Source: Tubulanus polymorphus
Taxonomy: Eukaryota; Animalia; Nemertea
Assembly (NCBI RefSeq): GCF_964204645.1
Contig: NC_134031.1
Location: 21,510,017 to 21,574,016, forward strand
Length of the DNA stretch: 64,000 nt
Direction: 5' to 3'
Part shown: in pieces, positions 3,001-64,000 of the stretch
Position numbering within the stretch: the stretch's first letter is position 1
Layout: each line of letters begins with the position of its first letter
Notes under the pieces: model-generated
The model's input: only the letters and a program-made list of their open reading frames with translations
Database searches by the model: none
What the model was told of the DNA's origin: nothing
Made by a program: the position numbers and the translations under genes

Positions 3001-6000
3001 GATTCAATCTGAAAAGATGTGTTAAGGCGTATTGAACTGATTTCAAATAGATAGGTGGAAAGATTAAGAATTTTCTGGTTATTTATGCTCCTGAAGATGA
3101 TGGACTCGATCTGAAATGATAGGTTAAGGTAAACTGAACTGATTTCGAGTAGATGGACTGAAAGATACAGATTTTTCTTGCAAAATAGGGTCCTAAAGAT
3201 GATGAATTCTATCTTAATTGATGGGTTAGGGTGTACTGAACTGATTTCAAATAGATAGGTTGAAAGAATCAGAATTTTCTGGCTGCTTTTGGTTCTGAAG
3301 ATGATGGATTCAATCTGAAAAGATGTGTTAAGGCGTATTGAACTGATTTCAAATAGATAGGTGGAAAGATTAAGAATTTTCTGGCTATTTATGCTCCTGA
3401 AGATGATGGACTCGATCTGAAATGATAGGTTAAGGTAGACTGAACTGATTTCGAGTAGATGGACTGAAAGATACAGATTTTTCTTGCAAAATAGGGTCCT
3501 AAAGATGATGAGTTCTATCTTAATTGATGGGTTAGGGTGAACTGAACTGATTTCAAATAGATAGGTGGAAAGAATCAGAATTTTCTGGCTGCCTTTGGTT
3601 CTGAAGATGATGGACTCAATCTGAAAAGATGGGCTAAGGCGTATTGAACTGATTTCAAATAGATAGGTGGAAAGATTAAGAATTTTCTGGCTATTTATGC
3701 TCCTGAAGATGATGGACTCGATCTGAAATGATAGGTTAAGGTAAACTGAACTGATTTCGAGTAGATGGACTGAAAGATACAGATTTTTCTTGCAAAATAG
3801 GGTCCTAAAGATGATGAATTCTATCTTAATTGATGGGTTAGGGTGTACTGAACTGATTTCAAATAGATAGGTTGAAAGAATCAGAATTTTCTGGCTGCTT
3901 TTGGTTCTGAAGATGATGGATTCAATCTGAAAAGATGTGTTAAGGCGTATTGAACTGATTTCAAATAGATAGGTGGAAAGATTAAGAATTTTCTGGCTAT
4001 TTATGCTCCTGAAGATGATGGACTCGATCTGAAATGATAGGTTAAGGTAGACTGAACTGATTTCGAGTAGATGGACTGAAAGATACAGATTTTTCTTGCA
4101 AAATAGGGTCCTAAAGATGATGAGTTCTATCTTAATTGATGGGTTAGGGTGTACTGAACTGATTTCAAATAGATAGGTTGAAAGAATCAGAATTTTCTGG
4201 CTGCTTTTGGTTCTGAAGATGATGGATTCAATCTGAAAAGATGGGTTAAGGCGTATTGAACTGATGTCAAATAGATAGGTGGAAAGATTAAGAATTTTCT
4301 GGCTATTTATGCTCCTGAAGATGATGGACTCGATCTGAAATGATAGGTTAAGGTAGACTGAACTGATTTCGAGTAGATGGACTGAAAGATACAGATTTTT
4401 CTTGCAAAATAGGGTCCTAAAGATGATGAATTCTATCTTAATTGATGGGTTAGGGTGAACTGAACTGATTTCAAATAGATGGGTGGAAAGAATCAGAATT
4501 TTCTGGCTGCCTTTGGTTCTGAAGATGATGGACTCAATCTGAAAAGATGGGCTGAGGCGTATTGAACTGATTTCAAATAGATAGGTGGAAAGATTAAGAA
4601 TTTTCTGGCTATTTATGCTCCTGAAGATGATGGACTCGATCTGAAATGATAGGTTAAGGTAAACTGAACTGATTTCGAGTAGATGGACTGAAAGATACAG
4701 ATTTTTCTTGCAAAATAGGGTCCTAAAGATGATGAATTCTATCTTAATTGATGGGTTAGGTTGTACTGAACTGATTTCAAATAGATAGGTTAAAAGAATC
4801 AGAATTTTCTGGCTGCTTTTGGTTCTGAAGATGATGGATTCAATCTGAAAAGATGTGTTAAGGCGTATTGAACTGATTTCAAATAGATAGGTGGAAAGAT
4901 TAAGAATTTTCTGGCTATTTATGCTCCTGAAGATGATTGTCTCGATCTGAAATGATAGGTTAAGGTAGACTGAACTGATTTCGAGTAGATGGACTGAAAG
5001 ATACAGATTTTTCTTGCAAAATAGGGTCCTAAAGATGATGAGTTCTATCTTAATTGATGGGTTAGGGTGAACTGAACTGATTTCAAATAGATAGGTGGAA
5101 AGATTAAAAATTTTCTGGCTGCCTTTGGTTCTGAAGATGATGGACTCAATCTGAAAAGATGGGCTAAGGCGTATTGAACTGATTTAAAATAGATAGGTGG
5201 AAAGATTAAGAATTTTCTGGCTATTTATGCTCCTGAAGATGATGGACTCGATCTGAAATGATAGGTTAAGGTAAACTGAACTGATTTCGAGTAGATGGAC
5301 TGAAAGATACAGATTTTTCTTGCAAAATAGGGTCCTAAAGATGATGAATTCTATCTTAATTGATGGGTTAGGGTGTACTGAACTGATTTCAAATAGAAAG
5401 GTTGAAAGATTAAGAACTTTCTGGCAACTTTTGGTTCTGAAGATGATGGATTCAATCTGAAAAGATGGGTTAAGGCGTATTGAACTGATTTCAAATGGAT
5501 AGGTGGAAAGATTAAGAATTTTCTGGCTATTTATGCTCCTGAAGATGATGGACTCGATCTGAAATGATAGGTTAAGGTAAACTGAACTGATTTCGAGTAG
5601 ATGGACAGAAAGATACAGATTTTTCTTGCAAAATAGGGTCCTAAAGATGATGAATTCTATCTTAATTGATGGGTTAGGGTGAACTGAATTGATTTCAAAT
5701 AGATAGGTGGAAAGAATCAGAATTTTCTGGCTGCCTTTGGTTCTGAAGATGATGGACTCAATCTGAAAAGATGGGCTAAGGCGTATTGAACTGATTTCAA
5801 ATAGATAGGTGGAAAGATTAAGAATTTTCTGGCTATTTATGCTCCTGAAGATGATGGACTCGATCTGAAATGATAGGTTAAGGTAAACTGAACTGATTTC
5901 GAGTAGATGGACTGAAAGATACAGATTTTTCTTGCAAAATAGGGTCCTAAAGATGATGAATTCTATCTTAATTGATGGGTTAGGGTGTACTGAACTGATT

Positions 6001-51000: not shown

Positions 51001-53974
51001 AAAGATACAGATTTTTCTTGCAAAATAGGGTCCTAAAGATGATGAATTCTATCTTAATTGATGGGTTAGGGTGTACTGAACTGATTTCAAATAGATAGGT
51101 TGAAAGATTAAGAATTTTCTGGCTGCTTTTGGTTCTGAAGATGATGGATTCAATCTGAAAAGATGTGTTAAGGCGTATTGAACTGATTTCAAATAGATAG
51201 GTGGAAAGATTAAGAATTTTCTGGCTATTTATGCTCCTGAAGATGATGGACTCGATCTGAAATGATAGGTTAAGGTAAACTGAACTGATTCCGAGCAGAT
51301 GGACTGAAAGATACAGATTTTTCTTGCAAAATAGGGTCCTAAAGATGATGAGTTCTATCTTAATTGATGGGTTAGGGTGTACTGAACTGATTTCAAATAG
51401 ATAGGTGGAAAGATTAAGAATTTTCTGGTTATTTATGCTCCTGAAGATGATGGACTCGATCTGAAATGATAGGTTAAGGTAAACTGAACTGATTTCGAGT
51501 AGATGGACTGAAAGATACAGATTTTTCTTGCAAAATAGGGTCCTAAAGATGATGAGTTCAATCTTAATTGATGGGTTAGGTTGTACTGAACTGATTTCAA
51601 ATAGATAGGTGGAAAGATTAAGAATTTTCTGGTTATTTATGCTCCTGAAGATGATGGACTCGATCTGAAATGATAGGTTAAGGTAAACTGAACTGATTTC
51701 GAGTAGATGGACTGAAAGATACAGATTTTTCTTGCAAAATAGGGTCCTAAAGATGATGAATTCTATCTTAATTGATGGGTTAGGGTGTACTGAACTGATT
51801 TCAAATAGATAGGTTGAAAGAATCAGAATTTTCTGGCTGCTTTTGGTTCTGAAGATGATGGATTCAATCTGCAAAGATGTGTTAAGGCGTATTGAACTGA
51901 TTTCAAATAGATAGGTGGAAAGATTAAGAATTTTCTGGCTATTTATGCTCCTGAAGATGATGGACTCGATCTGAAATGATAGGTTAAGGTAAACTGAACT
52001 GATTTCGAGTAGATGGACTGAAAGATACAGATTTTTCTTGCAAAATAGGGTCCTAAAGATGATGAATTCTATCTTAATTGATGGGTTAGGGTGTACTGAA
52101 CTGATTTCAAATGGATAGGTGGAAAGATTAAGAATTTTCTGGCTATTTATGCTCCTGAAGATGATGGACTCGATCTGAAATGATAGGTTAAGATAAACTG
52201 AACTGATTTCGAGTAGATGGACTGAAAGATACAGATTTTTCTTGCAAAATATGGTCCTAAAGATGATGAGTTCTATCTTAATTGATGGGTTAGGGTGTAC
52301 TGAACTGATTTCAAATAGATAGGTTGAGAGAATCAGAATTTTCTGGCTGCTTTTGGTTCTGAAGATGATGGATTCAATCTGAAAAGATGTGTTAAGGCGT
52401 ATTGAACTGATTTCAAATAGATAGGTGGAAAGATTAAGAATTTTCTGGCTATTTATGCTCCTGAAGATGATGGACTCGTTCTGAAATGATAGGTTAAGGT
52501 AAACTGAACTGATTTCGAGCAGATGGACTGAAAGATACAGATTTTTCTTGCAAAATAGGGTCCTAAAGATGATGAGTTCTATCTTAATTGATGGGTTAGG
52601 GTGTACTGAACTGATTTCAAATAGATAGGTTGAAAGAATCAGAATTTTCTGGCTGCTTTCGGTTCTGAAGATGATGGATTCAATCTGAAAAGATGTGTTA
52701 AGGCGTATTGAACTGATTTCAAATAGATAGGTGGAAAGATTAAGAATTTTCTGGCTATTTATGCTCCTGAAGATGATGGACTCGATCTGAAATGATAGGT
52801 TAAGGTAAACTGAACTGATTTCGAGCAGATGGACTGAAAGATACAGATTTTTCTTGCAAAATAGGGTCCTAAAGATGATGAGTTCTATCTTAATTGATGG
52901 GTTAGGGTGTACTGAACTGATTTCAAATAGATAGGTTGAAAGAATCAGAATTTTCTGGCTGCTTTTGGTCCTGAAGATGATGGATTCAATCTGAAAAGAT
53001 GTGTTAAGGCGTATTGAACTGATTTCAAATAGATAGGTGGAAAGATTAAGAATTTTCTGGCTATTTATGCTCCTGAAGATGATGGACTCGATCTGAAATG
53101 ATAGGTTAAGGTAGACTGAACTGATTTCGAGTAGATGGACTGAAAGATACAGATTTTTCTTGCAAAATAGGGTCCTAAAGATGATGAGTTCTATCTTAAT
53201 TGATGGGTTAGGGTGTACTGAACTGATTTCAAATAGATAGGTTGAAAGAATCAGAATTTTCTGGCTGCTTTTGGTTCTGAAGATGATGGCTTCAATCTGA
53301 AAAGATGGGTTAAGGCGTATTGAACTGATGTCAAATAGATAGGTGGAAAGATTAAGAATTTTCTGGCTATTTATGCTCCTGAAGATGATGGACTCGATCT
53401 GAAATGATAGGTTAAGGTAGACTGAACTGATTTCGAGTAGATGGACTGAAAGATACAGATTTTTCTTGCAAAATAGGGTCCTAAAGATGATGAATTCTAT
53501 CTTAATTGATGGGTTAGGGTGAACTGAACTGATTTCAAATAGATGGGTGGAAAGAATCAGAATTTTCTGGCTGCCTTTGGTTCTGAAGATGATGGACTCA
53601 ATGTGAAAAGATGGGCTGAGGCGTATTGAACTGATTTCAAATAGATAGGTGGAAAGATTAAGAATTTTCTGGCTATTTATGCTCCTGAAGATGATGGACT
53701 CGATCTGAAATGATAGGTTAAGGTAGACTGAACTGATTTCGAGTAGATGGACTGAAAGATACAGATTTTTCTTGCAAAAAAGGGTCCTAAAGATGATGAG
53801 TTCTATCTTAATTGATGGGTTAGGGTGTACTGAACTGATTTCAAATAGATAGGTTGAAAGATTAAGAACTTTCTGGCTGCTTTTGGTTCTGAAGATGATT
53901 GATTCAATCTGAAAAGATGGGTTAAGGCGTATTGAACTGATTTCAAATGGATAGGTGGAAAGAATCAGAATTTT
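1..53974. repeat. Subtelomeric satellite array: about 529 monomers of 102 bp in three types (A 1-102, C 103-204, B 205-306), mostly as 306-bp trimers with A-C 204-bp drop-out variants
   Basis: AGATTAAGAATTTTCTGGCTATTTATGCTCC recurs at 1, 307, 613 and onward. All monomers share TGAACTGATTTC and AAGATGATG. The antisense translation shows a 34-aa period (102 nt). The array starts before the window. Confidence 0.98.
17970..52140. repeat. Two tandem copies of a ~17-kb higher-order satellite block (boundaries approximate)
   Basis: Rare variants recur at fixed offsets. Offset 17546: AAAAAAGGG 18378/35924 and CTGAG 21776/39322. Offset 16628: extra-T run 25913/42541 and CTGCAAAG 35241/51869. The 918-bp difference equals a local duplication in copy 1 (23093/24011). 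Confidence 0.85.
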
Positions 53975-54200
53975 AGGGTTAGGGTTAGGGTTAGGGTTAG
54001 GGTTAGGGTTAGGGTTAGGGTTAGGGTTAGGGTTAGGGTTAGGGTTAGGGTTAGGGTTAGGGTTAGGGTTAGGGTTAGGGTTAGGGTTAGGGTTAGGGTT
54101 AGGGTTAGGGTTAGGGTTAGGGTTAGGGTTAGGGTTAGGGTTAGGGTTAGGGTTAGGGTTAGGGTTAGGGTTAGGGTTAGGGTTAGGGTTAGGGTTAGGG
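53973..54200 (+). repeat. Telomeric tract (TTAGGG)38
   Basis: 228 bp of perfect TTAGGG between the satellite and the retroelement. Confidence 0.99.
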
Positions 54201-55147
54201 TTAGGTTTAGAGATAGAGGTTAGGGGACCAAACCGAAGGTTTGGAGACCCCACTAGTGCACGGGCAGCGGGTTATCCCTGTAAAAAAGTAGTGAGAGTTA
54301 ATTGTTGTAGTGAGGCGGTCTACGGGACGTTCATGCCTCGGGGCGTGTTCGTGTCGAGTCGTCGTATCCAGTCTTGTTCGGCTGCTTCGCGGATCGGTCT
54401 CGTGGAGCCTGGTAGGTGTTGGAGACCGTACACCCGAAAGTGTTCGCGGGTGTGGTCGACTTGGTTGAAGTGGTCCGAGACTGGAGTCGAATTCTTCGTT
54501 CTGATGCGTGAGACGTGATGAGTGACGCGTTCTCGTAGAGACATTCCGGTTTGGCCGACGTACAGCATGTTGCACTTGGTGCATTCGATGCAGTATACAA
54601 TTTCACGGGTCGCGCAATTAATTGTGCTGCGGATCGCGTGCATTTTGTTGTGGCTGCGGCAAACGGTTGTTTCTCGGACGAGTGGACACGTACGACATCT
54701 CGGTGTTCTGCATTTCTCGGTGCCTCGACGTCGGGTTGACGGAGTTCTTTGAGTAGACCTGGAAATAGAAGAATTGGAAACAACGGAAGTATTTCTGTTA
54801 CGATGCGGTGAAGAGGGGACTCGGGGAGGGGGTGGCTCCGTGGGTTTGAGCTGCGACGAAGTTAGGAGATCTTTGAGACTCTTGTGCTTGGTGTAGGCGG
54901 TGACCGTGGTTACCTCGTCAGACCGGCCGGTGGCCGTAGCCAGTTCCGTAAATCTGGTTCGGATGTTACGGGCTAGGGTTCGGTTGGCTTCGGAGTGAGG
55001 TAAGATAAGCGGTAAACGCTTTTTCGGCGGTTCGTCGGCCCGTTGTTGTTCTCGTAGATCTCGTTCGGCGTGGTGCCGTAGAGCTTGGCTTTTGATGTGT
55101 CGCAGTTCGCGGTCTTTGTAGCCACGACCTCTGAGTACTTTAAGGAC
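54199..55147 (-). repeat. 3' pseudo-LTR (direct repeat copy 1, 949 bp)
   Basis: Appears identical to 60540-61488 (offset 6341; the ORF track gives identical peptides in both copies). Confidence 0.93.
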
Positions 55148-56620
55148 GGTTCCGGACGCTGCGTGTAAGTCCGAATCGTTATTGCAGATGCGCCGGAACC
55201 GGAGAATTTGACTTTTAACTATACCGGAAAATGTGTGTTTAGGGTGAAACGAGGATCGATGTAGTAATTGATGCGAATCGGTTGGTTTGAAGTAGACTTT
55301 GGTGTCTACTGTGCCACTTGTCTCGAATCGCGGGCCTTTGAAAGTGGTTACGTCCAGGAAGTTGACGCTGGTGTCGCTGATTTCGAACTTGAGTTTGATG
55401 GATCGGCTCACTGTTTGTAGGACGTCGATGAATTGCATCAACGTTTCGCGGCCGTGTTCCCAAACTATGTAGATGTCGTCGATGAACCGAGCGTATAGCG
55501 ATGGTTGGAGTTCGCTTCTGGACAGACCTTCTTTTTCCCATTCGGCTACAAAGATATTGGCATAAGAAGGAGCAAAACGCTTACCCATTGCGGTACCTTT
55601 TACCTGTAAATATGTGTTTTCGTTAAAGTTAAAGTCATTTTTCTTCAGGCTGATTTCGAGTAGTTTCAGCAGCTCGGCATCCGGGCGTCCCGGGTTCGGG
55701 TTATCTCGGAGAGCTTGTCGGATGCTGGCGATACCCTCTTCGTGGGGGATGTTGGTGTAGAGCGAATCGATGTCCATGGTGACGAGTAACGCATCGGCGC
55801 TAAATTGTTTACCGGCCAAAATATCTAGAAAGTGGTTGGTATCTTTGACGTACGACGGGTGACCGCGGGCGATCGGCTGCAAATAGTAGTCGATCCATTC
55901 CGAAATTTCGTAGGTTTCGGAGCCGCAGTCGGAGACGATCGGTCTCCCCGGCGGTACGCGATCGGGTACCGTCCACTTCTCGCGTTCTTTATGGATTTTG
56001 GGAAGCAGATAGAACTGCCTCTGTTTCGGATTATCGGGCGGTAATAGATATTCGGCGGTTTTTAGCGGGATGATTTTTCGTCGAGCCATATTTTCGATGA
56101 TTTCGCGAATTTCTTCCCCGGTCTGTTCGAAGATCGGTTGCTGCAGCGGCTGATAATACTCGAGATCGGCTAGTTGGCGCATGGCTTCGTGGACGTAGTC
56201 GTCGCGGTCCATGATAACCGTAGCGGAACCCTTATCGGCGGCTTTGATGACAATATTAGTGTTGTCACGCAGCTGCTGGAGGGCTTCGCGTTCCTGTTTA
56301 GTGAGGTTATCATTTACGCGACGCGTATCCCTGGTTTGTTGAGCCAATTCGTGCGCGTCGTTGCAGAACCCGGCGATTACTGGTTCTATTTCATCCGGAG
56401 CCCAACTGCTGGGCAGACGGAAACGCGGAGCCTCGCGGTCCGGTTTGTCTCGGAAGTGATGGTCGAGTTTTACTAGCCGGTTGAATCGGCACACTCCCTT
56501 GGTGCGCTCGGTCGCGGCGGCATCAGAACCGATTTTTGGAGTCGGGCAATAAGTGAGGCCCTTTCGGAGTAGCTGATGTTGCGCCGGACTTAGGCGGAGT
56601 GAACGTGTGAGGTTGACCAC
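54320..56620 (-). CDS. ORF2: Penelope-type reverse transcriptase + CxxxxCxxC linker + GIY-YIG endonuclease (no proximal AUG; frame stays open up to 56812, overlapping the ORF1 end)
   Basis: Motifs: VVNL, KAADKG, FYLLPKIHK, PGRPIVS, TMDIDSLYTNIP, QVKGTAMG..FAPSYANIF, RFIDD, NFLDV, YFKPTD, HP, CRTPRCRTC, IVYCIECTKC..LYVGQT...R..HH...HF...E..WI. Confidence 0.96.
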   Translation of the reverse strand: MVNLTRSLRLSPAQHQLLRKGLTYCPTPKIGSDAAATERTKGVCRFNRLVKLDHHFRDKPDREAPRFRLPSSWAPDEIEPVIAGFCNDAHELAQQTRDTRRVNDNLTKQEREALQQLRDNTNIVIKAADKGSATVIMDRDDYVHEAMRQLADLEYYQPLQQPIFEQTGEEIREIIENMARRKIIPLKTAEYLLPPDNPKQRQFYLLPKIHKEREKWTVPDRVPPGRPIVSDCGSETYEISEWIDYYLQPIARGHPSYVKDTNHFLDILAGKQFSADALLVTMDIDSLYTNIPHEEGIASIRQALRDNPNPGRPDAELLKLLEISLKKNDFNFNENTYLQVKGTAMGKRFAPSYANIFVAEWEKEGLSRSELQPSLYARFIDDIYIVWEHGRETLMQFIDVLQTVSRSIKLKFEISDTSVNFLDVTTFKGPRFETSGTVDTKVYFKPTDSHQLLHRSSFHPKHTFSGIVKSQILRFRRICNNDSDLHAASGTVLKVLRGRGYKDRELRHIKSQALRHHAERDLREQQRADEPPKKRLPLILPHSEANRTLARNIRTRFTELATATGRSDEVTTVTAYTKHKSLKDLLTSSQLKPTEPPPPRVPSSPHRNRNTSVVSNSSISRSTQRTPSTRRRGTEKCRTPRCRTCPLVRETTVCRSHNKMHAIRSTINCATREIVYCIECTKCNMLYVGQTGMSLRERVTHHVSRIRTKNSTPVSDHFNQVDHTREHFRVYGLQHLPGSTRPIREAAEQDWIRRLDTNTPRGMNVP

Positions 56621-56748
56621 CGGGCTCCCGAGAGCGGTGACCGGATCGCGTCGCGCTTGGTTTGGTGCCGGTTCTTCGTGTTCGTCGGACCTGGAAATGG
56701 AAGAAATCAGAGAAGCATTGGTTAATTCCGGTTGATTTAACTCACCAA

Positions 56749-56785
56749 TAGTGGACCCGTTGGTCTCACTAATACTTAGTTTAAA
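56749..56785 (-). promoter_or_regulatory. Candidate -1 programmed ribosomal frameshift signal (U_UUA_AAC, 7-nt spacer, hairpin)
   Basis: TTTAAAC (56785-56779) is in X_XXY_YYZ register with ORF1, directly before its TAA. Hairpin TAGTG-A-GACC-AACG-GGTC-CACTA spans 56771-56749. ORF2 is in the -1 frame and open through the site. Confidence 0.8.
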
Positions 56786-58332
56786 CCACTGAGCCAGTGG
56801 TCCAGCAGGGTGTTAGCTGTACCACGGTTCCAGTGGATCCCGTCTCCAACAACTCTGAAGCGTCGATCATCGATGGGTGGTATCGCGGTGACGTCGTCGT
56901 GAATCTCGAGGAATTCGTTGAACTTCCGGGCGAACTGCTGGTGTTCGCGGGTCGTGTTGAGTTGAACGAAGTGGACGAACGAGTGCTGATACTTCTTGAC
57001 TGCGGCGTTGATCAGGCGCTGTGTGGTCTTCTTGGCGGTCGCTTCGAAGTTGTTGTCGCGGTTGTTGATTCCGACGCTGATGATCACTGTATCCGGGCGA
57101 TCTCGGCGCTCCGGTACAGCATCGATCAGGTCGGCGAGATGAGCTATCTTGCAGCCGGGGAAGCTCTCGATCTGGACGTCATCCGGACGGCGGCTTGATG
57201 TGATGTTACTCAGATTTGAGTCACCAATCACCAGAATGGGTCGCCGGGTTGGTGGCAGACTCCAATCCTGTTTCTTCCGACCCGTATTCGGATGACGGCG
57301 AACTTCCTGGGGCGCCATCGGTCTCGGTGTTGGCGTCGGACTTCGCGCTGGCAGTAGGCGCCCTGGTGACCTGTAATGAGACGGAGAGCTGGAAAGAGAA
57401 GAAGAGAGAGACGGCGTCGGACTGCTGGTTGGTGCGGTCGGCGTTCTCTGCGGCGGCGGCGTCGGGTTTCGAGGCGGCGGCGTCGGACTTCTCGGTGGCG
57501 TCGGACTTCTTGGTGGCGGCGGCGGCGTCGGCATCGGACTTCTCGGTGGTGGCGCCATTCTGGTTGGTGGCGTCCTGGTGACATCCGCGTAGCTTCTCGG
57601 TGACCTGGAATCAGAAAAAGAAGGAGGCGCTGTGGGCGCGGCGGGCGCGGCTGCGGTTGGTGCAGGCGTCCTCGGCGTCGCGGGCTTTCGAATCTTCCGG
57701 CTCGGTCTCGGCGGCGGACGAATCTTCGGTTCCGTGGGTGCCTCCTGGTGGTGTGACCTGAAATGAGAAGGGGAAGAAGGTGGGTTAGATAGGACATTTC
57801 TGAGTTTGTCAGACAGAGCCTGACCGCGGAATTTCGACCGCAAATCCAGCGCGATGTTGAAAAGCCGGATCGTTCCGGGGCTCAGACGGGAGCCGAAATT
57901 CCTCCGGGCCCATGTCAGGGCGACATCCTGTGCTGATAGACAGTCCGGCAGAGGATCACCCATTAGCTGAACAAATGTGGCAGCGTAATGGATGGTCAGC
58001 TCTTTCGAAACTGTCTCCATCCAGACGTCCGCGGCAGCGTGCAGCTGCACCGTTACTGCTTCGGTGCAAGCCGCCGGCCGCAGGAACATCTTCAGATGGT
58101 CCTTCTTCCTCCGAATCGCTTTCGGACCAGAGCTCAACTGGGCAAGGTGGTGCGCCACTTGAAGAGCTCTATAGTAATTTTTCGGCGACATCCCGGGTTG
58201 CTGGTGTCGCTCAGGGCGTCCTCCGCCCTTGCTGGTCTTCTCAGCTGGTGGTCGTTTCTTCTTTCGAGTAGATCGCTCCATTGACAGATATTTCGGCGAG
58301 GTTGCCTTCGTCAGTGTCAGTGCAGGAATCAT
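56776..58332 (-). CDS. ORF1: N-terminal basic/helical region, Pro/Ser/Thr-rich linker, C-terminal SGNH/GDSL hydrolase (esterase) domain
   Basis: SGNH blocks: ILVIGDSNL (Ser), SFPG, ISVGINN, DGIHW (Asp/His). The true start may be the second AUG at 58281. Confidence 0.88.
   Translation of the reverse strand: MIPALTLTKATSPKYLSMERSTRKKKRPPAEKTSKGGGRPERHQQPGMSPKNYYRALQVAHHLAQLSSGPKAIRRKKDHLKMFLRPAACTEAVTVQLHAAADVWMETVSKELTIHYAATFVQLMGDPLPDCLSAQDVALTWARRNFGSRLSPGTIRLFNIALDLRSKFRGQALSDKLRNVLSNPPSSPSHFRSHHQEAPTEPKIRPPPRPSRKIRKPATPRTPAPTAAAPAAPTAPPSFSDSRSPRSYADVTRTPPTRMAPPPRSPMPTPPPPPRSPTPPRSPTPPPRNPTPPPQRTPTAPTSSPTPSLSSSLSSSPSHYRSPGRLLPARSPTPTPRPMAPQEVRRHPNTGRKKQDWSLPPTRRPILVIGDSNLSNITSSRRPDDVQIESFPGCKIAHLADLIDAVPERRDRPDTVIISVGINNRDNNFEATAKKTTQRLINAAVKKYQHSFVHFVQLNTTREHQQFARKFNEFLEIHDDVTAIPPIDDRRFRVVGDGIHWNRGTANTLLDHWLSGLN
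57410..57555 (-). repeat. Imperfect ~21-27-bp coding minisatellite (PPPRSPT repeats) in the ORF1 linker
   Basis: Repeated GGCGGCGTCGGACTTCT on +; peptide PPPRSPMPTPPPPPRSPTPPRSPTPPPRNPTPPPQRTPT. Confidence 0.75.
58279..58322 (-). ncRNA. Minimal type I hammerhead ribozyme
   Basis: RNA reads cacUGACA-CUGACGA-A-GGC(AACCUC)GCC-GAAA-UAUC^UGUCAaug. Stem I is UGACA/UGUCA, stem II is GGC/GCC, stem III is the loopless palindrome AUAU. Predicted cleavage is after AUC, between 58287 and 58286. This matches the minimal hammerhead form known from PLEs. Confidence 0.85.
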
Positions 58333-58355
58333 GCTGAACTAGGATTAGACACGGG

Positions 58356-58363
58356 TTTTTATA
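58356..58363 (-). promoter_or_regulatory. Candidate TATA box (TATAAAAA) upstream of the hammerhead and ORF1
   Basis: GTGTATAAAAACCCG lies about 28 nt upstream of an Inr-like TTCAGC at the AT-rich/GC-rich boundary. Motif evidence only. Confidence 0.45.
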
Positions 58364-59710
58364 CACGCAGCGCGCAACAAGTGAACAGTATTTGAGTTAG
58401 AAGTTAAGTGACCATATGAGACCTTGTGATCTAGACTAATTGTACTTCTGTGATCAAGCTAATAGACAAACTAGGGGTCTGACTAATTATGCCTTTGATC
58501 CAGAGTGACTAGAAAACAGCACTAATTATGGCCCTTGATCTAGCTGTTGAATAGTTTGCTTTGATGTATAGTTCTAAAGATCTAAAGAACGGCGTGTCTA
58601 ATATAGAATTGAAAAGTTTATTTCGATATAACCTAATAAATACTCAAAGTGTTTTCTATAAAGAGAAATCTAGAATATGTATTATTAATATACGTGAACC
58701 GGAATGTTCGAAATATGTCCGAGTTCAGTTTCAAAATTGCTTAATTCCTAATTAGTTTAGACGCGTTAATTAGGCGGTGCGCGGCCGAGGCGTATTCCGA
58801 TATACGCGTGTTTACTAAATAGTCGTAAATGGTGAAATCCGGTTCTTAGTTAATCAAGTTTTCTCCGTATTCTAAAGCTTTTAAGAGCGGATTTTGAAAT
58901 ATCTACGCGGTATTCTACCGAAGATTGGATGAATTAGACAGCGCGGCGTCGGCGATTTAGTAGGAAGTTATAACCCGTAAGGTCTAAATTACTGAGTGAG
59001 CGCGGGTGGTTAATTAGCCCTAATTATGGGTGACGAGTTTTGATAGAAATGTCTTACTAATACGTCTGTTTTAATTCTAAGTTCTTAAATATAATTCTAT
59101 TAGATGAACTACGCTTATTTAGAGTTATTAGGATCGAGTAAAGCTATGTGAACTTGAACATGTGACAAATATATTCAGACCGGAGCGCGGGAATTCAGTA
59201 AATCGGTTTAAGCTTGCGTAGTTTGAGTGGTTCAAAAACACTATGATCTCTTCTTTAATCCGAAGGTTGAAATATATACGTGATATAAAACTCTTTTTGA
59301 ATCGGGAATATTGGGCTGTGTTCTTTGGAAAAAAACTGATGAGTTTGAAGGCGTCGTACCTGCGATTTTGTATAGAATTGAGTCGGATAATTAGTCAAGA
59401 GGCGCAGGTGGCCGATCGGTCACTAATTATGAGTGACTTGTAAACAGTGATTGATGTCCGTGGACTATTATTTATCCTATAAACTTCTTATACCTCTACA
59501 ACCTATAGTGCGGTTTTTGAATATAGCTACTAATACTTTTGAGCGATCTCATTAGAATTGTTATCCGAAAATAAACTGTCTGTTTTAGAGAAATTTGAAA
59601 CTTGACACCCGGATCTATATAGAGTATGTTCCGAGAGTTGGCGCGTAGATACGATAATAGTTAATTAGGACGTAGCGGGTTAGGTCCCCGACCGAACGTT
59701 ATAGATTAAA

Positions 59711-60267
59711 CGGAGGTTAATTAGGGTGCCGCGGGTTCGAGTCCCGACCAGGCGCCGTTTAGTAATTGAATAGTTCTATTCTAAATGTTTTTTACCTATT
59801 CTGGATTCCTTTTAATTCTGAATCTTTGACGGATACACTAGTACTTTTCAGATGTTTCTACGATATAATCTTAGTGCCGACGCATATTTTCAAAATAAAT
59901 AAGAGCGGTGGACTGGTTACCGGTATCTAACGCGGGGCACCGGCAACCCGTCAGTACTAGCGGTTAATTTCGGAGCGGCGGGTACGGTTCCCGAGTATTC
60001 TCCGGAGCTTAATTCGGGTGCCGCGGGTTCGAGTCCCGATCAGGCGCGCCGTTTTAGTAATTGAGTATATTCTTACCTATTCTAGATTCCCTTTCTTTCT
60101 AAATTTATAGTAGATTAATTAATACTTTTCGGGTGTTTCTATGATATAATCTCAGTGCTGACGCATATTTTCGAAATAGATGATAGCGGTGGACTGGTTA
60201 CCGGTTTCTATCGTCCTGGGACAGGCAACCAGTCTGTACTAGCGGTTAGGGTTCGGTTCCCGATATC
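59711..60267. repeat. Diverged tandem duplication (~292-bp period), each copy with a B-box/T-arm motif and a conserved hairpin
   Basis: GGGTGCCGCGGGTTCGAGTCCCGA occurs at about 59724 and 60016; AGCGGTGGACTGGTTACCGGT...GTACTAGCGGTTA is present in both copies. Confidence 0.85.
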
Positions 60268-60539
60268 GCGCTTTTGTTTATTTTTCTAACTGTTTCTGAT
60301 ATTTGGTCTGTCTTCTTACTTACTGAATTTCGATTGAGTTTTCAAAGTAAAGCAGAGAGAACTAATTAAAAGATAAAAGGTTGATGATTCCTGTGGAGCT
60401 TGTGATCTTGGAGTTTGTTTTGTACTCTGTCTCTGAGCGGGTTTCTGCTTCAGGCGACGGAGGATGATTCTGCAAATAGATTGATGATTAATAATTAATC
60501 AGTTAAGATAATTTACGAGGGAAACCTGGCACGGGCTAA

Positions 60540-61488
60540 GGTTAGGTTTAGAGATAGAGGTTAGGGGACCAAACCGAAGGTTTGGAGACCCCACTAGTGC
60601 ACGGGCAGCGGGTTATCCCTGTAAAAAAGTAGTGAGAGTTAATTGTTGTAGTGAGGCGGTCTACGGGACGTTCATGCCTCGGGGCGTGTTCGTGTCGAGT
60701 CGTCGTATCCAGTCTTGTTCGGCTGCTTCGCGGATCGGTCTCGTGGAGCCTGGTAGGTGTTGGAGACCGTACACCCGAAAGTGTTCGCGGGTGTGGTCGA
60801 CTTGGTTGAAGTGGTCCGAGACTGGAGTCGAATTCTTCGTTCTGATGCGTGAGACGTGATGAGTGACGCGTTCTCGTAGAGACATTCCGGTTTGGCCGAC
60901 GTACAGCATGTTGCACTTGGTGCATTCGATGCAGTATACAATTTCACGGGTCGCGCAATTAATTGTGCTGCGGATCGCGTGCATTTTGTTGTGGCTGCGG
61001 CAAACGGTTGTTTCTCGGACGAGTGGACACGTACGACATCTCGGTGTTCTGCATTTCTCGGTGCCTCGACGTCGGGTTGACGGAGTTCTTTGAGTAGACC
61101 TGGAAATAGAAGAATTGGAAACAACGGAAGTATTTCTGTTACGATGCGGTGAAGAGGGGACTCGGGGAGGGGGTGGCTCCGTGGGTTTGAGCTGCGACGA
61201 AGTTAGGAGATCTTTGAGACTCTTGTGCTTGGTGTAGGCGGTGACCGTGGTTACCTCGTCAGACCGGCCGGTGGCCGTAGCCAGTTCCGTAAATCTGGTT
61301 CGGATGTTACGGGCTAGGGTTCGGTTGGCTTCGGAGTGAGGTAAGATAAGCGGTAAACGCTTTTTCGGCGGTTCGTCGGCCCGTTGTTGTTCTCGTAGAT
61401 CTCGTTCGGCGTGGTGCCGTAGAGCTTGGCTTTTGATGTGTCGCAGTTCGCGGTCTTTGTAGCCACGACCTCTGAGTACTTTAAGGAC
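60540..61488 (-). repeat. 5' pseudo-LTR (5'-truncated tandem copy of the PLE 3' end)
   Basis: Matches 54199-55147; ends abruptly at ...TTAAGGAC, followed by TAGGG(TTAGGG)n. Confidence 0.93.
60661..61488 (-). pseudogene. Truncated ORF2 copy (end of thumb region, Cys linker, complete GIY-YIG domain)
   Basis: Duplicate of 54320-55147; ORF-track entry 60661-60984 is the GIY-YIG portion. Confidence 0.88.
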
Positions 61489-62566
61489 TAGGGTTAGGGT
61501 TAGGGTTAGGGTTAGGGTTAGGGTTAGGGTTAGGGTTAGGGTTAGGGTTAGGGTTAGGGTTAGGGTTAGGGTTAGGGTTAGGGTTAGGGTTAGGGTTAGG
61601 GTTAGGGTTAGGGTTAGGGTTAGGGTTAGGGTTAGGGTTAGGGTTAGGGTTAGGGTTAGGGTTAGGGTTAGGGTTAGGGTTAGGGTTAGGGTTAGGGTTA
61701 GGGTTAGGGTTAGGGTTAGGGTTGGGTTAGGGTTAGGGTTAGGGTTAGGGTTAGGTTAGGGTTAGGGTTAGGGTTAGGGTTAGGGTTAGGGTTAGGGTTA
61801 GGGTTAGGGTTAGGGTTAGGGTTAGGGTTAGGGTTAGGGTTAGGGTTAGGGTTAGGGTTAGGGTTAGGGTTAGGGTTAGGGTTAGGGTTAGGGTTAGGGT
61901 TAGGGTTAGGGTTAGGGTTAGGGTTAGGGTTAGGTTAGGGTTAGGGTTAGGGTTAGGGTTAGGGTTAGGGTTAGGGTTAGGGTTAGGGTTAGGGTTAGGG
62001 TTAGGGTTAGGGTTAGGGTTAGGGTTAGGGTTAGGGTTAGGGTTAGGGTTAGGGTTAGGGTTAGGGTTAGGGTTAGGGTTAGGGTTAGGGTTAGGGTTAG
62101 GGTTAGGGTTAGGGTTAGGGTTAGGGTTAGGGTTAGGGTTAGGGTTAGGGTTAGGGTTGGGTTAGGGTTAGGGTTAGGGTTAGGGTTAGGGTTAGGGTTA
62201 GGGTTAGGGTTAGGGTTAGGGTTAGGGTTAGGGTTAGGGTTAGGGTTAGGGTTAGGGTTAGGGTTAGGGTTAGGGTTAGGGTTGGGTTAGGGTTAGGGTT
62301 AGGGTTAGGGTTAGGGTTAGGGTTAGGGTTAGGGTTAGGGTTAGGGTTAGGGTTAGGGTTAGGGTTAGGGTTAGGGTTAGGGTTAGGGTTAGGGTTAGGG
62401 TTAGGGTTAGGGTTAGGGTTAGGGTTAGGGTTAGGGTTAGGGTTAGGGTTAGGGTTAGGGTTAGGGTTAGGGTTAGGGTTAGGGTTAGGGTTGGTTAGGG
62501 TTAGGGTTAGGGTTAGGGTTAGGGTTAGGGTTAGGGTTAGGGTTAGGGTTAGGGTTAGGGTTAGGG
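61489..62566 (+). repeat. Telomeric tract, about 180 TTAGGG units with six short deletion variants
   Basis: 1078 bp. Variants: TTGGG (61722, 62157, 62282), TTAGG (61751, 61930), TTGG (62491). Confidence 0.99.
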
Positions 62567-62768
62567 TTAGGTTTAGAGGTATAGGTTAGGGGAACCAATC
62601 AGAGTATCAATTAATGTTTTTGTGTTCTTCAGATTAACCCACCACAATTAATCGAGAGTAATTAACTGATATCTTTTCAGAACCCCACTGTGACACTGGC
62701 AGCGGGAAAGCCGGCTAACTCCACCTGCCGGAAGGTATTAGAGTTAGGGATACCGAAAAGCAATCCAC

Positions 62769-62841
62769 CACCTAGACCGGGACTCGAACACCGGACCTTT
62801 CGTTTGCCGGACGACTGCTCTACCGATTGAGCTACCTGGGC
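62769..62841 (-). pseudogene. tRNA-derived domain (pseudo-tRNA, nominal anticodon GGC), copy 1
   Basis: GCCCAGG-TA-GCTCAATCGGTAGAGC-A-GTCGT-CCGGCAA-ACGAA-AGGT-CCGGTG-TTCGAGT-CCCGG-TCTAGGT-G. A box and B box core are intact. There is a C33, a C-A acceptor mismatch and a bulged T-stem. Confidence 0.85.
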
Positions 62842-63103
62842 GGACCGACGATTGCTCTCGGTTTCACCTCTATCTCCGTGCTTTCCTGGCACTGGTCGGG
62901 GTTAGGTTTAGAGGTATAGGTTAGGGGAACCAATCAGAGTATCAATTAATGTTTTTGTGTTCTTCAGATTAACCCACCACAATTAATCGAGAGTAATTAA
63001 CTGATATCTTTTCAGAACCCCACTGTGACACTGGCAGCGGGAAAGCCGGCTAACTCCACCTGCCGGAAGGTATTAGAGTTAGGGATACCGAAAAGCAATC
63101 CAC

Positions 63104-63176
63104 CACCTAGACCGGGACTCGAACACCGGACCTTTCGTTTGCCGGACGACTGCTCTACCGATTGAGCTACCTGGGC
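63104..63176 (-). pseudogene. tRNA-derived domain, copy 2
   Basis: Same as copy 1, +335. Confidence 0.85.
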
Positions 63177-63438
63177 GGACCGACGATTGCTCTCGGTTTC
63201 ACCTCTATCTCCGTGCTTTCCTGGCACTGGTCGGGGTTAGGTTTAGAGGTATAGGTTAGGGGAACCAATCAGAGTATCAATTAATGTTTTTGTGTTCTTC
63301 AGATTAACCCACCACAATTAATCGAGAGTAATTAACTGATATCTTTTCAGAACCCCACTGTGACACTGGCAGCGGGAAAGCCGGCTAACTCCACCTGCCG
63401 GAAGGTATTAGAGTTAGGGATACCGAAAAGCAATCCAC

Positions 63439-63511
63439 CACCTAGACCGGGACTCGAACACCGGACCTTTCGTTTGCCGGACGACTGCTCTACCGATTGA
63501 GCTACCTGGGC
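63439..63511 (-). pseudogene. tRNA-derived domain, copy 3
   Basis: Same as copy 1, +670. Confidence 0.85.
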
Positions 63512-63773
63512 GGACCGACGATTGCTCTCGGTTTCACCTCTATCTCCGTGCTTTCCTGGCACTGGTCGGGGTTAGGTTTAGAGGTATAGGTTAGGGGAAC
63601 CAATCAGAGTATCAATTAATGTTTTTGTGTTCTTCAGATTAACCCACCACAATTAATCGAGAGTAATTAACTGATATCTTTTCAGAACCCCACTGTGACA
63701 CTGGCAGCGGGAAAGCCGGCTAACTCCACCTGCCGGAAGGTATTAGAGTTAGGGATACCGAAAAGCAATCCAC

Positions 63774-63846
63774 CACCTAGACCGGGACTCGAACACCGGA
63801 CCTTTCGTTTGCCGGACGACTGCTCTACCGATTGAGCTACCTGGGC
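63774..63846 (-). pseudogene. tRNA-derived domain, copy 4
   Basis: Same as copy 1, +1005. Confidence 0.85.
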
Positions 63847-64000
63847 GGACCGACGATTGCTCTCGGTTTCACCTCTATATCTCCGTGCTTTCCTGGCACT
63901 GGTCGGGGTTAGGTTTAGAGGTATAGGTTAGGGGAACCAATCAGAGTATCAATTAATGTTTTTGTGTTCTTCAGATTAACCCACCACAATTAATCGAGAG

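Follow-up and report, generated by a model that had tools for sequence, protein, structure and literature searches.

We favour, with moderate confidence, the view that a young, active, Neptune-like family of endonuclease-bearing (EN+) Penelope-like elements (PLEs) extends the chromosome ends of Tubulanus polymorphus by end-primed reverse transcription and carries tRNA-headed partners along with it. Under the current division, EN+ PLEs spread within chromosomes and EN- PLEs attach to telomeres (PMC8557442), and the 2023 catalogue of telomeric retrotransposons lists Athena as its sole PLE (PMC10088271).

The window (the whole stretch of NC_134031.1 that was analysed, 64,000 nt) contains, in order, a 306-bp satellite, 38 TTAGGG repeats, 1.15 units of a PLE, about 180 TTAGGG repeats and a 335-bp array. 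This order and its coordinates, proposed in a first-pass annotation, were reproduced by tandem-repeat and direct-repeat analysis of the window, and both the PLE and the 335-bp element were found, as that annotation had claimed, to be antisense to the G-strand. The features are as follows.

1-53974, no strand assigned: subtelomeric satellite, 306 bp (3 x 102 bp), at least 54 kb (TRF)
53973-54205, + strand: proximal telomeric tract, 38 perfect TTAGGG plus TTAGG, whose register matches the PLE's own GGTTAGG
54206-60546, - strand: full PLE unit, 6341 bp, sense-strand 3' end at 54206 (direct repeat, 6341-bp spacing)
54206-54319, - strand: 3' UTR module, common to the 335- and 353-bp elements and the 61% relative
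54320-56620, - strand: ORF2, PLE RT, CX4CxxC linker and GIY-YIG (RVT_1 and GIY-YIG profile matches)
56776-58332, - strand: ORF1, 518 aa, Pro/Ser-rich middle and C-terminal SGNH/GDSL-like esterase (GDSN, GINN, DGIHW)
58282-58319, - strand: candidate minimal (dimeric-type) hammerhead, read by eye
58333-60546, - strand: AT-rich 5' region, 2.2 kb (pseudo-LTR or promoter part)
60530-60553, - strand: PLE unit junction CACGGGCTAA-GGTTAGG-TTTAGAG, present at 27 genome places
60547-61488, - strand: second, partial PLE unit, 942 bp, 5'-truncated, identical to 54206-55147
61489-62571, + strand: distal telomeric tract, about 180 TTAGGG, six of the repeats being 5-nt variants (1-nt slips) (TRF)
62572-64000, - strand: 335-bp non-autonomous array, 4.3 head-to-tail units, 99% (TRF)
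62769-62841, 63104-63176, 63439-63511 and 63774-63846, - strand: tRNA-like parts, one per 335-bp unit

The TTAGGG run at 53973-54205 is present on the + strand only, with 0 such runs expected by chance. The partial unit at 60547-61488 shows zero differences from the first unit across their common stretch, and it is capped by the distal tract, whose first letters are TAGGG. A 200-N scaffold gap starts one base past the window end, 49 kb from the contig end, so the sequence beyond the 335-bp array is not assembled; the array of the window stops at this gap and not at a terminus, a counterpoint to be kept in mind for any mechanism acting at ends. Both element 3' joins in the window read GGTTAGG-TTTAGAG, in agreement with the first-pass annotation, but the same sequence is also found where the two PLE units meet (60540-60553) and between all successive 335-bp units. 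It thus belongs to the elements themselves and alone is no proof of a telomere join.

ORF2 matched RVT_1 with E = 1.1e-7 and contains the PLE-type RT motifs ADKG, TMDIDSLY, GTAMG and FIDD. Its match to the Pfam GIY-YIG profile (E = 3.3e-4) falls slightly short of the curated cut-off; the search for homologues returned 3321, and the RT plus GIY-YIG architecture is found among the matches listed. The linker reads CRTPRCRTC, and the GIY-YIG part, IVYCIECTKCNMLYVGQT, has two internal Cys, R, HH, E and N; judged by these residues, the endonuclease looks intact. Endonuclease and linker are both kept in P0002, a 61%-identical relative that likewise ends in CCCTAA repeats. Such ends were seen in relatives at 61% and 54% identity (runs ERR10705268 and ERR9287893), and one relative terminates in (ACT)n, without telomeric repeats. 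The GIY-YIG and linker motifs suggest that the family is Neptune-like. ORF1 of relatives matches Lipase_GDSL_2.

In the sense orientation, the 3' module consists of CCCGCTGCC-GTGCAC, a GGGG...CCCC hairpin, UAACCUCUAUCUCUAAA and then CCUAACC; it contains no CUGANGA/GAAA core, and the GGGG/CCCC-closed hairpin stands in its place. The candidate hammerhead at the start of ORF1 is made up of stem I TGACA/TGTCA, CTGACGA, stem II, GAAA and TATC, followed by a putative cut (58287/58286) 5 nt ahead of the second AUG of ORF1, and Rfam scans of 53900-64000 and 58200-58450 returned no hammerhead. Upstream, position 58333 is a repeated 5' end among PLE copies, and copy depth falls about two-fold at the 3' border of the 58333-60546 region. 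The 1.15 units of the window form a partial tandem of the pseudo-LTR type; 5' truncations are frequent, and an inverted 5' fragment is present on contig C10.

The PLE and its partners, whose units are 335 and 353 bp long, have both ends in common, namely the 3' module and the 5' motif GTGCCAGG, located 7 nt past CCTAACC. These common ends uphold the claim that the window holds an autonomous/non-autonomous pair. The tRNA-like part, which begins 57 nt into the 335-bp unit, matched the Rfam tRNA model with 43 bits (E 1.3e-6) and contains A- and B-box-like sequence. The partners thus resemble tRNA-derived SINEs in their tRNA-related head, their Pol III boxes and the 3' end that they have in common with an autonomous partner; they are atypical in that ARAGORN called no tRNA in the window, the tRNA part is internal and the copies form telomeric tandems instead of being dispersed. 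Eleven partner arrays begin on telomeric repeats, all in the same polarity. The 335-bp array was also considered as a retrozyme, an identity that was dropped since the ribozyme core is missing: Rfam found no hammerhead in 62572-64000, and the unit sequence is without a complete core.

Genome-wide, 90 PLE 3' ends were found. About 60 of them belong to one-way arrays, which occupy true telomeric termini on C8 and C10, lie at contig ends or close to them on C4 and C7, or are carried by small contigs that are unplaced. Both elements are concentrated at chromosome ends in a single polarity: the 3' end faces inward, and the sense strand corresponds to the C-strand. C10 starts with 1.3 kb of CCCTAA and C8 with 2.9 kb, and PLE and 353-bp units follow directly in the expected polarity; on C4, the PLE array is adjoined by the same 306-bp satellite as in the window. 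The alternation of elements with telomerase-type tracts, noted in the first-pass annotation, is evident from long tracts of this kind, and the genome contains a TERT RBD match.

At least 40 RT copies are ~100% identical, the majority lying no more than 70 kb from contig ends or on small contigs. Near-identity could be explained by homogenisation, and one may suppose that a few old subtelomeric insertions were spread at the DNA level by unequal crossing-over, break-induced replication or gene conversion, retrotransposition to ends being rare or extinct. The 27 identical tandem junctions agree with such spread, as do unit lengths that are uniform within an array and specific to it (6354, 6342, 6341 and 6251 bp). 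We nevertheless consider it quite improbable, since the ORFs of the ~100%-identical copies are intact and since, as described below, truncation points, sampled reads and copy depth all speak against it.

About one-third of the PLE 3' ends are chromosome-internal and occur in both orientations, most of them belonging to a marked sister subfamily. The internal copies on C9, C11, C1 and C12 were typed by fully specified sequence patterns alone; for the C11 copies, a guessed flank gave a match at C1:12.16 Mb and nowhere else. Seven 3' ends of the exact family are either chromosome-internal by coordinate, on C2 at 15.1 and 16.5 Mb and on C3 at 16.0-16.2 Mb, or, on C6 at 22.4 Mb, without an assigned distance from a contig end. 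A few internal copies are as young as the terminal ones, and the seven ends count against the end-primed view. The C3 locus is in gapless continuity with unique DNA, and degenerate telomere-like satellite adjoins its young copies. One C2 copy abuts AT-rich unique DNA and has a 5' junction without telomeric letters, from which it follows that the endonuclease is probably still in use.

Such copies bear on an alternative in which the GIY-YIG endonuclease, guided by the CX4CxxC linker, nicks (TTAGGG)n or resident tails and ordinary target-primed reverse transcription ensues, location being set by target sequence. TRAS and SART in silkworm telomeres do insert through a sequence-targeted endonuclease, and Neptune and Naiad are thought to target microsatellites. 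A CX2-5CxxC linker has been proposed to steer the microsatellite bias of Neptune (PMC8557442), and this proposal lends weight to targeted insertion here, together with the conservation of an apparently intact endonuclease and linker in the telomere-tailed relative and with the (ACT)n-ended relative, which points to an association with simple repeats as a trait of the lineage. The young copies beside satellite on C3, the C2 copy in AT-rich DNA and the telomeric tracts flanking both elements of the window can be read in the same way. We regard targeted insertion as rather unlikely, given that the copies within terminal arrays all share one orientation and given the structure of the joins.

Among the 90 PLE 3' ends, 35 have a telomeric tail that measures 11 nt or more, and in 25 it reaches 20 nt or more. 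About ten joins to non-telomeric DNA bear GGGTTAGGGTTAGGGTTAGG as their tail or variants of it 14, 18 or 19 nt long; tail lengths at such joins are mostly 20 nt, with 14, 26 and 32 nt also seen, and the DNA joined in this way consists of truncated PLE copies, the 306-bp satellite, unique DNA and the 353-bp element. Read from these letters, the element RNA probably carries a C-strand tail of its own; no RNA run was found to contain the element. The tails beside non-telomeric DNA are unsplit and have a modal length of 20 nt, which would be hard to obtain through cuts in resident tails, and the innermost copy on C4 is linked to the satellite by a 20-nt tail alone; both observations count against targeted insertion. 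The first-pass annotation had proposed priming by telomeric G-strand 3' ends. Priming is not confined to such ends, since at least 10 independent non-telomeric 3' joins are present in the assembly, and further ones were found in independent reads.

In-register microhomology at the joins amounts to 1-4 nt. Of 18 cases in which truncated PLE copies meet telomeric runs, 14 share at least 1 nt (P = 4e-6) and 8 share at least 2 nt (P = 6e-6). More than 15 different truncation points were found, each with a microhomology join of its own, which is difficult to reconcile with DNA-level spread; the copy pairs that share a truncation point (5056; 4934) and differ by 6 nt in the tail would suit it better. 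Truncated copies run directly into the 3' end of the copy after them. On C10, for instance, a proximal copy breaks off at 4934, a full copy comes next, and the lost 5' part was not found distally. Nested insertion was dropped because the 5' remainders of truncated copies are missing; their absence favours end addition or template jumping and is one more difficulty for targeted insertion. Whether priming takes place at the terminus or at nicks inside existing arrays, a question raised by the first-pass annotation, was thus narrowed by array structure and not settled.

Raw read set X5 comes from an individual other than that of the assembly; runs X1-X3, which consist of contigs, contributed little. 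The join types of the assembly recur in its reads, with tails of 9-11, 20, 22, 26, 32 and 36 nt, so that these types have support from raw reads; the window's own join, from PLE position 941 into the distal tract, did not appear among the read alignments listed, and the support is for join types. Near-identical repeats assemble poorly and the 200-N gap ends the window array, yet mis-joining of telomeric reads is a very improbable source of the alternation of tracts and elements, comparable architecture being repeated without gaps on at least 12 contigs and the join types being contained in the reads of the other sample. Reads suggest about 160 PLE 3' ends, versus 90 assembled.

Joins at PLE positions 562, 2728 and 3485 in X5 are not in the assembly. 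Because sampled joins of a second individual are missing from it, the family looks active, and the same three joins argue against DNA-level spread; they may, however, lie in unassembled telomeric DNA rather than be polymorphic. Read depth in X5 is five times lower at the 5' end of the PLE than at its 3' end, a gradient that is typical for reverse transcription and is likewise not expected from DNA-level spread. A chimeric join of PLE position 3870 to the 335-bp leader resembles a template-switch product.

In the end-primed mechanism that we favour, the template RNA would end in the conserved 3' hairpin module followed by CCUAACC and a few CCCUAA units, and a free DNA 3' end would pair with these C-strand repeats. 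With a telomeric G-overhang as primer, pairing would be full and the join seamless, as in the window; any other DNA end would pair over 0-4 nt. Copying by the RT would start at a CCC and proceed inward, leaving tails of 14, 20, 26 or 32 nt, and cDNA synthesis would commonly end early. The new end could then be lengthened by telomerase, giving long tracts that often start with TAGGG; alternatively, a further element RNA, or a template jump during the same event, could extend it. Arrays with uniform tandem units would arise from read-through RNA of several units or by local recombination, and the endonuclease would be retained for occasional internal insertions. Internal initiation without target homology has been shown in vitro for a PLE RT (PMC11167929). 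As counterpoints, endonuclease insertion beside resident copies or into tracts could give the same final structures, and end joining that follows endonuclease-dependent insertion would likewise leave microhomology at 5' joins.

A bolder version, which we offer as speculation and consider improbable, is that the PLE RNP constitutes a second end-extension system beside telomerase, its 3' module serving much as the template region of telomerase does. The hairpin would form the boundary, the CCUAACC and CCCUAA units behind it would align on any DNA end, and a few TTAGGG-type repeats would be added in 6-nt steps before copying continues into the element. If this were true, broken or eroded ends would be healed by a telomere-like seed, and the family would represent a living intermediate linking EN+ PLEs, telomere-attached PLEs and telomerase.

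The closest parallel in arrangement is Athena/Terminon of bdelloid rotifers, an EN-deficient group that likewise forms one-way head-to-tail arrays at chromosome ends, has reverse-complement telomeric repeats right after the 3'-terminal RNA fold and encodes a GDSL esterase among its proteins (PMC6431247, PMC8557442). The Athena-type trait of telomeric arrays in head-to-tail order, with truncation by short telomeric stretches, was found here as well. Unlike Athena/Terminon, the Tubulanus PLE has a GIY-YIG domain, apparently intact by its motifs, fused to the RT, a compact unit (6.3 kb), the TTAGGG repeat and tRNA-headed passengers. The hammerhead of Athena/Terminon is directly upstream of the 3' telomeric repeats, whereas the 3' fold of the Tubulanus PLE has no recognisable hammerhead and the candidate is at the start of ORF1. 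With Neptune it shares a C-terminal GIY-YIG with CCHH and a CX2-5CxxC linker, partial tandems with pseudo-LTRs, the inverted 5' fragment (C10) and the simple-repeat association of relatives; Neptune has been described as single-ORF and dispersed, whereas the Tubulanus PLE has a separate GDSL ORF1 and is mainly in telomeric arrays. In published trees, Neptune is weakly grouped with the telomeric EN- Coprina (PMC8557442).

Among non-LTR elements, TRAS/SART of Bombyx mori and HeT-A/TART/TAHRE of Drosophila also form polarised end arrays with the 3' end toward the centromere, and TRAS/SART, like the Tubulanus PLE, are endonuclease-positive alongside telomerase repeats. The Tubulanus element differs from this class in having a PLE RT and GIY-YIG rather than APE, and in reaching non-telomeric ends via a self-templated telomeric tail. 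Its partners are similar to animal non-LTR retrozymes and non-autonomous PLE derivatives in being short non-coding tandems with PLE-shared termini (PMC7229834; bioRxiv 10.64898/2026.07.22.740005); retrozymes carry a hammerhead per unit, whereas in the 335-/353-bp units no core was found, and these units have a SINE-like tRNA module and are telomeric. In vitro, the RT of the Anolis Poseidon PLE begins inside a multi-copy RNA, does not need a primer match and leaves a short tail (Frangieh et al. 2024, PMC11167929), much as proposed here, and the hammerhead of that element overlaps the ORF start, as the Tubulanus candidate would; its tail is non-telomeric, in contrast, and its targets are AT-rich and endonuclease-cut (PMC11167929).

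The Tubulanus PLE family thus combines both lifestyles, having a conserved endonuclease, a few internal copies and tens of kb of polarised end arrays among telomerase repeats. Telomere stacking of PLEs has so far been described only for EN-lacking relatives, and the telomeric PLE is here accompanied by tRNA-headed parasites of its own. Quantised tails and microhomology lead to a concrete prediction on how the RT captures DNA ends, and the transition between the two PLE lifestyles, as well as the relation of PLE RT to telomerase, becomes testable in one organism.

The order of elements in the window is given below, with the subunits and open reading frames of the 6341-bp Penelope-like element (PLE).

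1-53974, satellite with a 306-bp unit of three 102-bp subunits, filling the entire stretch
from 53973, plus strand, proximal telomeric tract of 38 perfect TTAGGG followed by TTAGG
54206-60546, minus strand, full PLE unit (direct repeat, 6341-bp spacing)
54320-56620, minus strand, ORF2: PLE-type reverse transcriptase (RT), CX4CxxC linker and GIY-YIG
56776-58332, minus strand, ORF1 with a C-terminal SGNH/GDSL-like esterase domain
58282-58319, PLE sense strand, candidate minimal hammerhead just inside ORF1, read by eye
60547-61488, minus strand, second PLE unit, broken off after 942 bp, with 0 differences from the first over the shared stretch
61489-62571, distal telomeric tract of ca. 180 TTAGGG with six one-base slips
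after 62571 to the window end, 335-bp repeat, 4.3 units at 99% identity

Coordinates, repeat units and strands agree with the first-pass annotation, which had described this order accurately. Telomeric hexamers occur in the window on the plus strand only (chance expectation, none). The GGTTAGG-TTTAGAG sequence that was said to join both elements to telomeric tracts is indeed present, but it is not specific to these joins: it is also found at the internal PLE junction (60540-60553) and at every 335-bp junction and therefore belongs to the elements themselves. A scaffold gap of 200 N (C7:21574017-21574216; positions 1-200 of the C7 locus L031) begins one base past the last base of the window, so the sequence past the 335-bp array is unassembled. 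Another 49 kb separate the window from the end of the 21.6-Mb contig; this stretch beyond the gap may be a separately placed contig, and the true end of C7 may thus lie at or past the 335-bp array.

ORF2 contains the PLE-type RT motifs ADKG, TMDIDSLY, GTAMG and FIDD, and its GIY-YIG domain retains both internal cysteines as well as the conserved R, E and N. ORF2 has no ATG near its start and begins ca. 155 nt past the ORF1 stop codon (56621-56775) in a different frame. The match of ORF1 to Pfam Lipase_GDSL_2 has E = 0.014, compared with 6e-7 for the ORF1 of a relative, to which the window ORF1 aligns with E = 9e-14. At 97% identity, the best-matching protein comes from the nemertean Tubulanus polymorphus and is uncharacterised. 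The candidate hammerhead consists of stem I TGACA/TGTCA, CTGACGA, stem II, GAAA and TATC, with the predicted cut 5 nt upstream of the second AUG of ORF1. Since Rfam models did not detect a hammerhead at 58282-58319, it stays a candidate. In the Anolis PLE, a hammerhead overlaps the ORF start (PMC11167929).

We located PLE 3′ ends across the genome with a 31-nt pattern, which retrieved 90 sites; the RT region is present in at least 40 copies at ca. 100% identity. GGTTAGG is present at 84 of the 90 ends, tandem junctions (CACGGGCTAA abutting GGTTAGG) make up 27, and telomeric tails of at least 11 and at least 20 nt are found at 35 and 25, respectively. Ca. 60 of the sites belong to arrays, located at the starts of contigs (C4 0-71 kb, C8 and C10), near the end of C7 or on small unplaced contigs (C30, C32, C34, C43, C54, C63, C65 and C66). 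C10 and C8 start with 1.3 and 2.9 kb of CCCTAA, which runs straight into PLE and 353-bp units (the latter related to the 335-bp repeat); these starts are real chromosome termini. In all such terminal arrays, the PLE sense strand is the C-strand and the 3′ end points toward the chromosome interior. At ca. 30 internal sites, copies occur in both orientations.

Most internal sites, including part of those on C2, share a diagnostic base change (GTAGTAAGAG instead of GTAGTGAGAG) and hence form a sister subfamily (C11:0.35-3.78 Mb, 11 sites; C5:18.13 Mb; C6:11.27 Mb; C1:17.89 Mb; both orientations), whose groups on C11 have a spacing of ca. 74-85 kb, suggestive of a large segmental repeat. Seven exact-family sites are found outside terminal arrays, six of them internal by coordinates and one, at C6 22.4 Mb, not placed relative to the contig end; flanks are described for two. 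At C3 16.16-16.17 Mb, the order is unique DNA, 14 nt of telomeric repeat, a truncated and a full PLE, a 19-nt tail and a degenerate telomere-like satellite of more than 1.3 kb, contiguous and with no gaps. This mid-chromosome satellite (positions 3935-5301 of locus L005, C3:16.172-16.173 Mb; units such as CCCTAACCCTCTAAACACTAAA) adjoins a young PLE; it may be what is left of an old chromosome end, mark a fusion point or have served as an interstitial target. At C2 16.49 Mb, AT-rich unique DNA directly abuts PLE position ca. 4127, without telomeric letters.

Tandem PLE blocks on C4, C54 and C63 each have a unit length of their own (6354, 6342 and 6251 bp), a sign that each variant was amplified locally. 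Amplification at the DNA level clearly contributes to such uniform tandem blocks, but is unable to explain the many distinct joins.

Independent evidence comes from X5, raw Illumina whole-genome data (ca. 7.2x) that carry the same species label but were obtained from a different sample in a different study. Depth along the PLE falls from ca. 1150 at the 3′ end to ca. 220 in the 5′ region, as expected from 5′ truncation; per genome equivalent, this amounts to ca. 160 3′ ends, more than the 90 in the assembly, and to 30-38 5′ regions. Joints back to the 3′ end were detected from PLE positions 156, 294, 562, 2171, 2276, 2728, 3485, 3513, 4127 and 5702, with telomeric intervening letters (tails of 9-11, 20, 22, 25-26, 26, 32 and 36 nt). 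The join at 4127 is also in the assembly; those at 562, 2728 and 3485 have no match anywhere in it and represent either polymorphism or unassembled telomeric DNA. Since the same join types appear in raw reads, they are real and not a product of assembly. Reads on 54200-54362 join position 156 both to the 5′-most 50 nt and to position 1, revealing a deletion derivative of very small size, in which the last 156 nt are fused to the 5′ end, apparently in tandem. A search for RNA runs with the element returned none.

Position 4127 (58333 in the window) is the A of the ORF1 start codon. It recurs as a 5′ end in three C65 copies (L002, L006 and L017), the internal C2 copy (L036) and X5 reads, whose depth drops by half there. 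It may be the 5′ end of the main RNA, in which case the 2.2-kb AT-rich part would be a promoter or pseudo-LTR, with read-through RNA as the only template from which it is copied. This region contains a 144-nt repeat pair and, at 59655-60213, four copies of a 45-nt motif; the motif includes GCGGGTTCGAGTCCCGA, which resembles a tRNA T-arm and B box, as in the 335-bp element.

Where the PLE 3′ end meets non-telomeric DNA (ca. 10 cases), the same short tail, GGGTTAGGGTTAGGGTTAGG, intervenes in seven, and tails of 14, 18 and 19 nt in the remainder; some tails are longer, at 26 and 32 nt. The partners are PLE copies truncated at 577, 627, 4127, 4562, 4934 and 5056, the satellite on C4, unique DNA and the 353-bp unit. 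Priming by telomeric G-strand ends, as originally proposed, thus suits the seamless telomeric joins in the window but not these ones. On C10, a copy that ends at 4934 precedes a full copy and a 58-nt copy; an inverted fragment comes next, and then the terminal telomere. The 5′ portion that the 4934 copy lacks is nowhere distal to it, and truncated proximal copies are therefore not interrupted ones. Letters fitting both sides were scored at joins of truncated PLE to telomeric runs: among 18 independent events, 14 had microhomology of at least 1 nt (expected a quarter; P = 4e-6) and 8 of at least 2 nt (P = 6e-6). Three of five long tracts start with TAGGG, while short tails start with GGG, which in this small sample hints at two different polymerases.

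The main rival reading is that insertion depends on the endonuclease and targets telomeric repeats, similar to TRAS/SART or to the microsatellite bias proposed for Neptune. It draws on the intact endonuclease and the existence of internal copies; as the main route it appears unlikely, for the tails are unsplit and constant, 5′ remainders are missing and satellite is joined to tail on C4. The best reading, which we consider somewhat probable, is that the PLE uses end-primed reverse transcription on an RNA with its own short C-strand tail. Any free 3′ end would prime, with whatever pairing to the RNA tail exists: telomeric overhangs would give seamless joins, such as both in the window, and other ends quantised tails and microhomology. 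Long tracts would be supplied by telomerase; two exon-like matches to the TERT RBD on C5:22802328-22803024 (Pfam PF12009, 33 and 28 bits) indicate a putative TERT gene. Tandem stretches would arise from template jumps, and from multi-unit RNAs or recombination. End-primed synthesis fits both the in vitro behavior of a PLE RT, which starts inside its own RNA and does not need primer homology (PMC11167929), and what is described for Terminons, whose head-to-tail arrays are cut short by small stretches of telomeric repeat (PMC6431247).

Every 335-bp unit carries a minus-strand tRNA-like segment (Rfam tRNA, 43 bits, E 1.3e-6), which ARAGORN rejected as a tRNA gene. The 353-bp element found elsewhere in the genome is 82-84% identical to it. 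Both share with the PLE a 5′ motif, GTGCCAGG, exactly 7 nt past CCTAACC, and a 3′ module, CCCGCTGCC-GTG..C.., a GGGG/CCCC-closed hairpin and then TAACCT.TA.CTCTA.ACCTAACC. The hairpin arms differ in sequence among the PLE, the 353-bp unit and a 61%-identical relative, with complementarity kept. A retrozyme reading is disfavoured, since neither unit has a hammerhead core; the two are better described as tRNA-headed, SINE-like passengers. Eleven passenger arrays begin on 11 nt or more of telomeric repeat; as with the PLE, those at contig starts are on the minus strand and those toward the high-coordinate contig end on the plus strand. On C65 (L003, C65:8775-8860), PLE position 3870 is joined to the 57-nt leader of a multimer of the 335-bp element, exactly at the 5′ edge of the tRNA-like part, and a 26-unit array follows; a template switch would leave a joint of this kind.

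A literature search of incomplete coverage retrieved neither an endonuclease-bearing PLE with a telomeric lifestyle nor a tRNA-headed PLE passenger, which is weak evidence. The window PLE resembles Athena/Terminon elements in its telomeric mode of working but differs in possessing the endonuclease whose absence defines that group and in lacking a hammerhead at the 3′ end. Judged by domain architecture, it is probably Neptune-like. Among its relatives, the 61%-identical one (protein, Logan assembly) has the same 3′ module and endonuclease motifs and continues past CCTAACC with three and a half more CCCTAA units, reaching the contig end; a 54% relative terminates in degenerate CCCTAA repeats, another in (ACT)n, and a TARA lineage is arranged in 6256-bp tandem units that lack telomeric repeats. 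Five of the sampled relatives have a complete upstream ORF; in each, a long ORF1 precedes RT-GIY-YIG, and in three it matches Lipase_GDSL_2. The telomeric tail thus characterises one sub-lineage of a broader group that is Neptune-like and has two ORFs.
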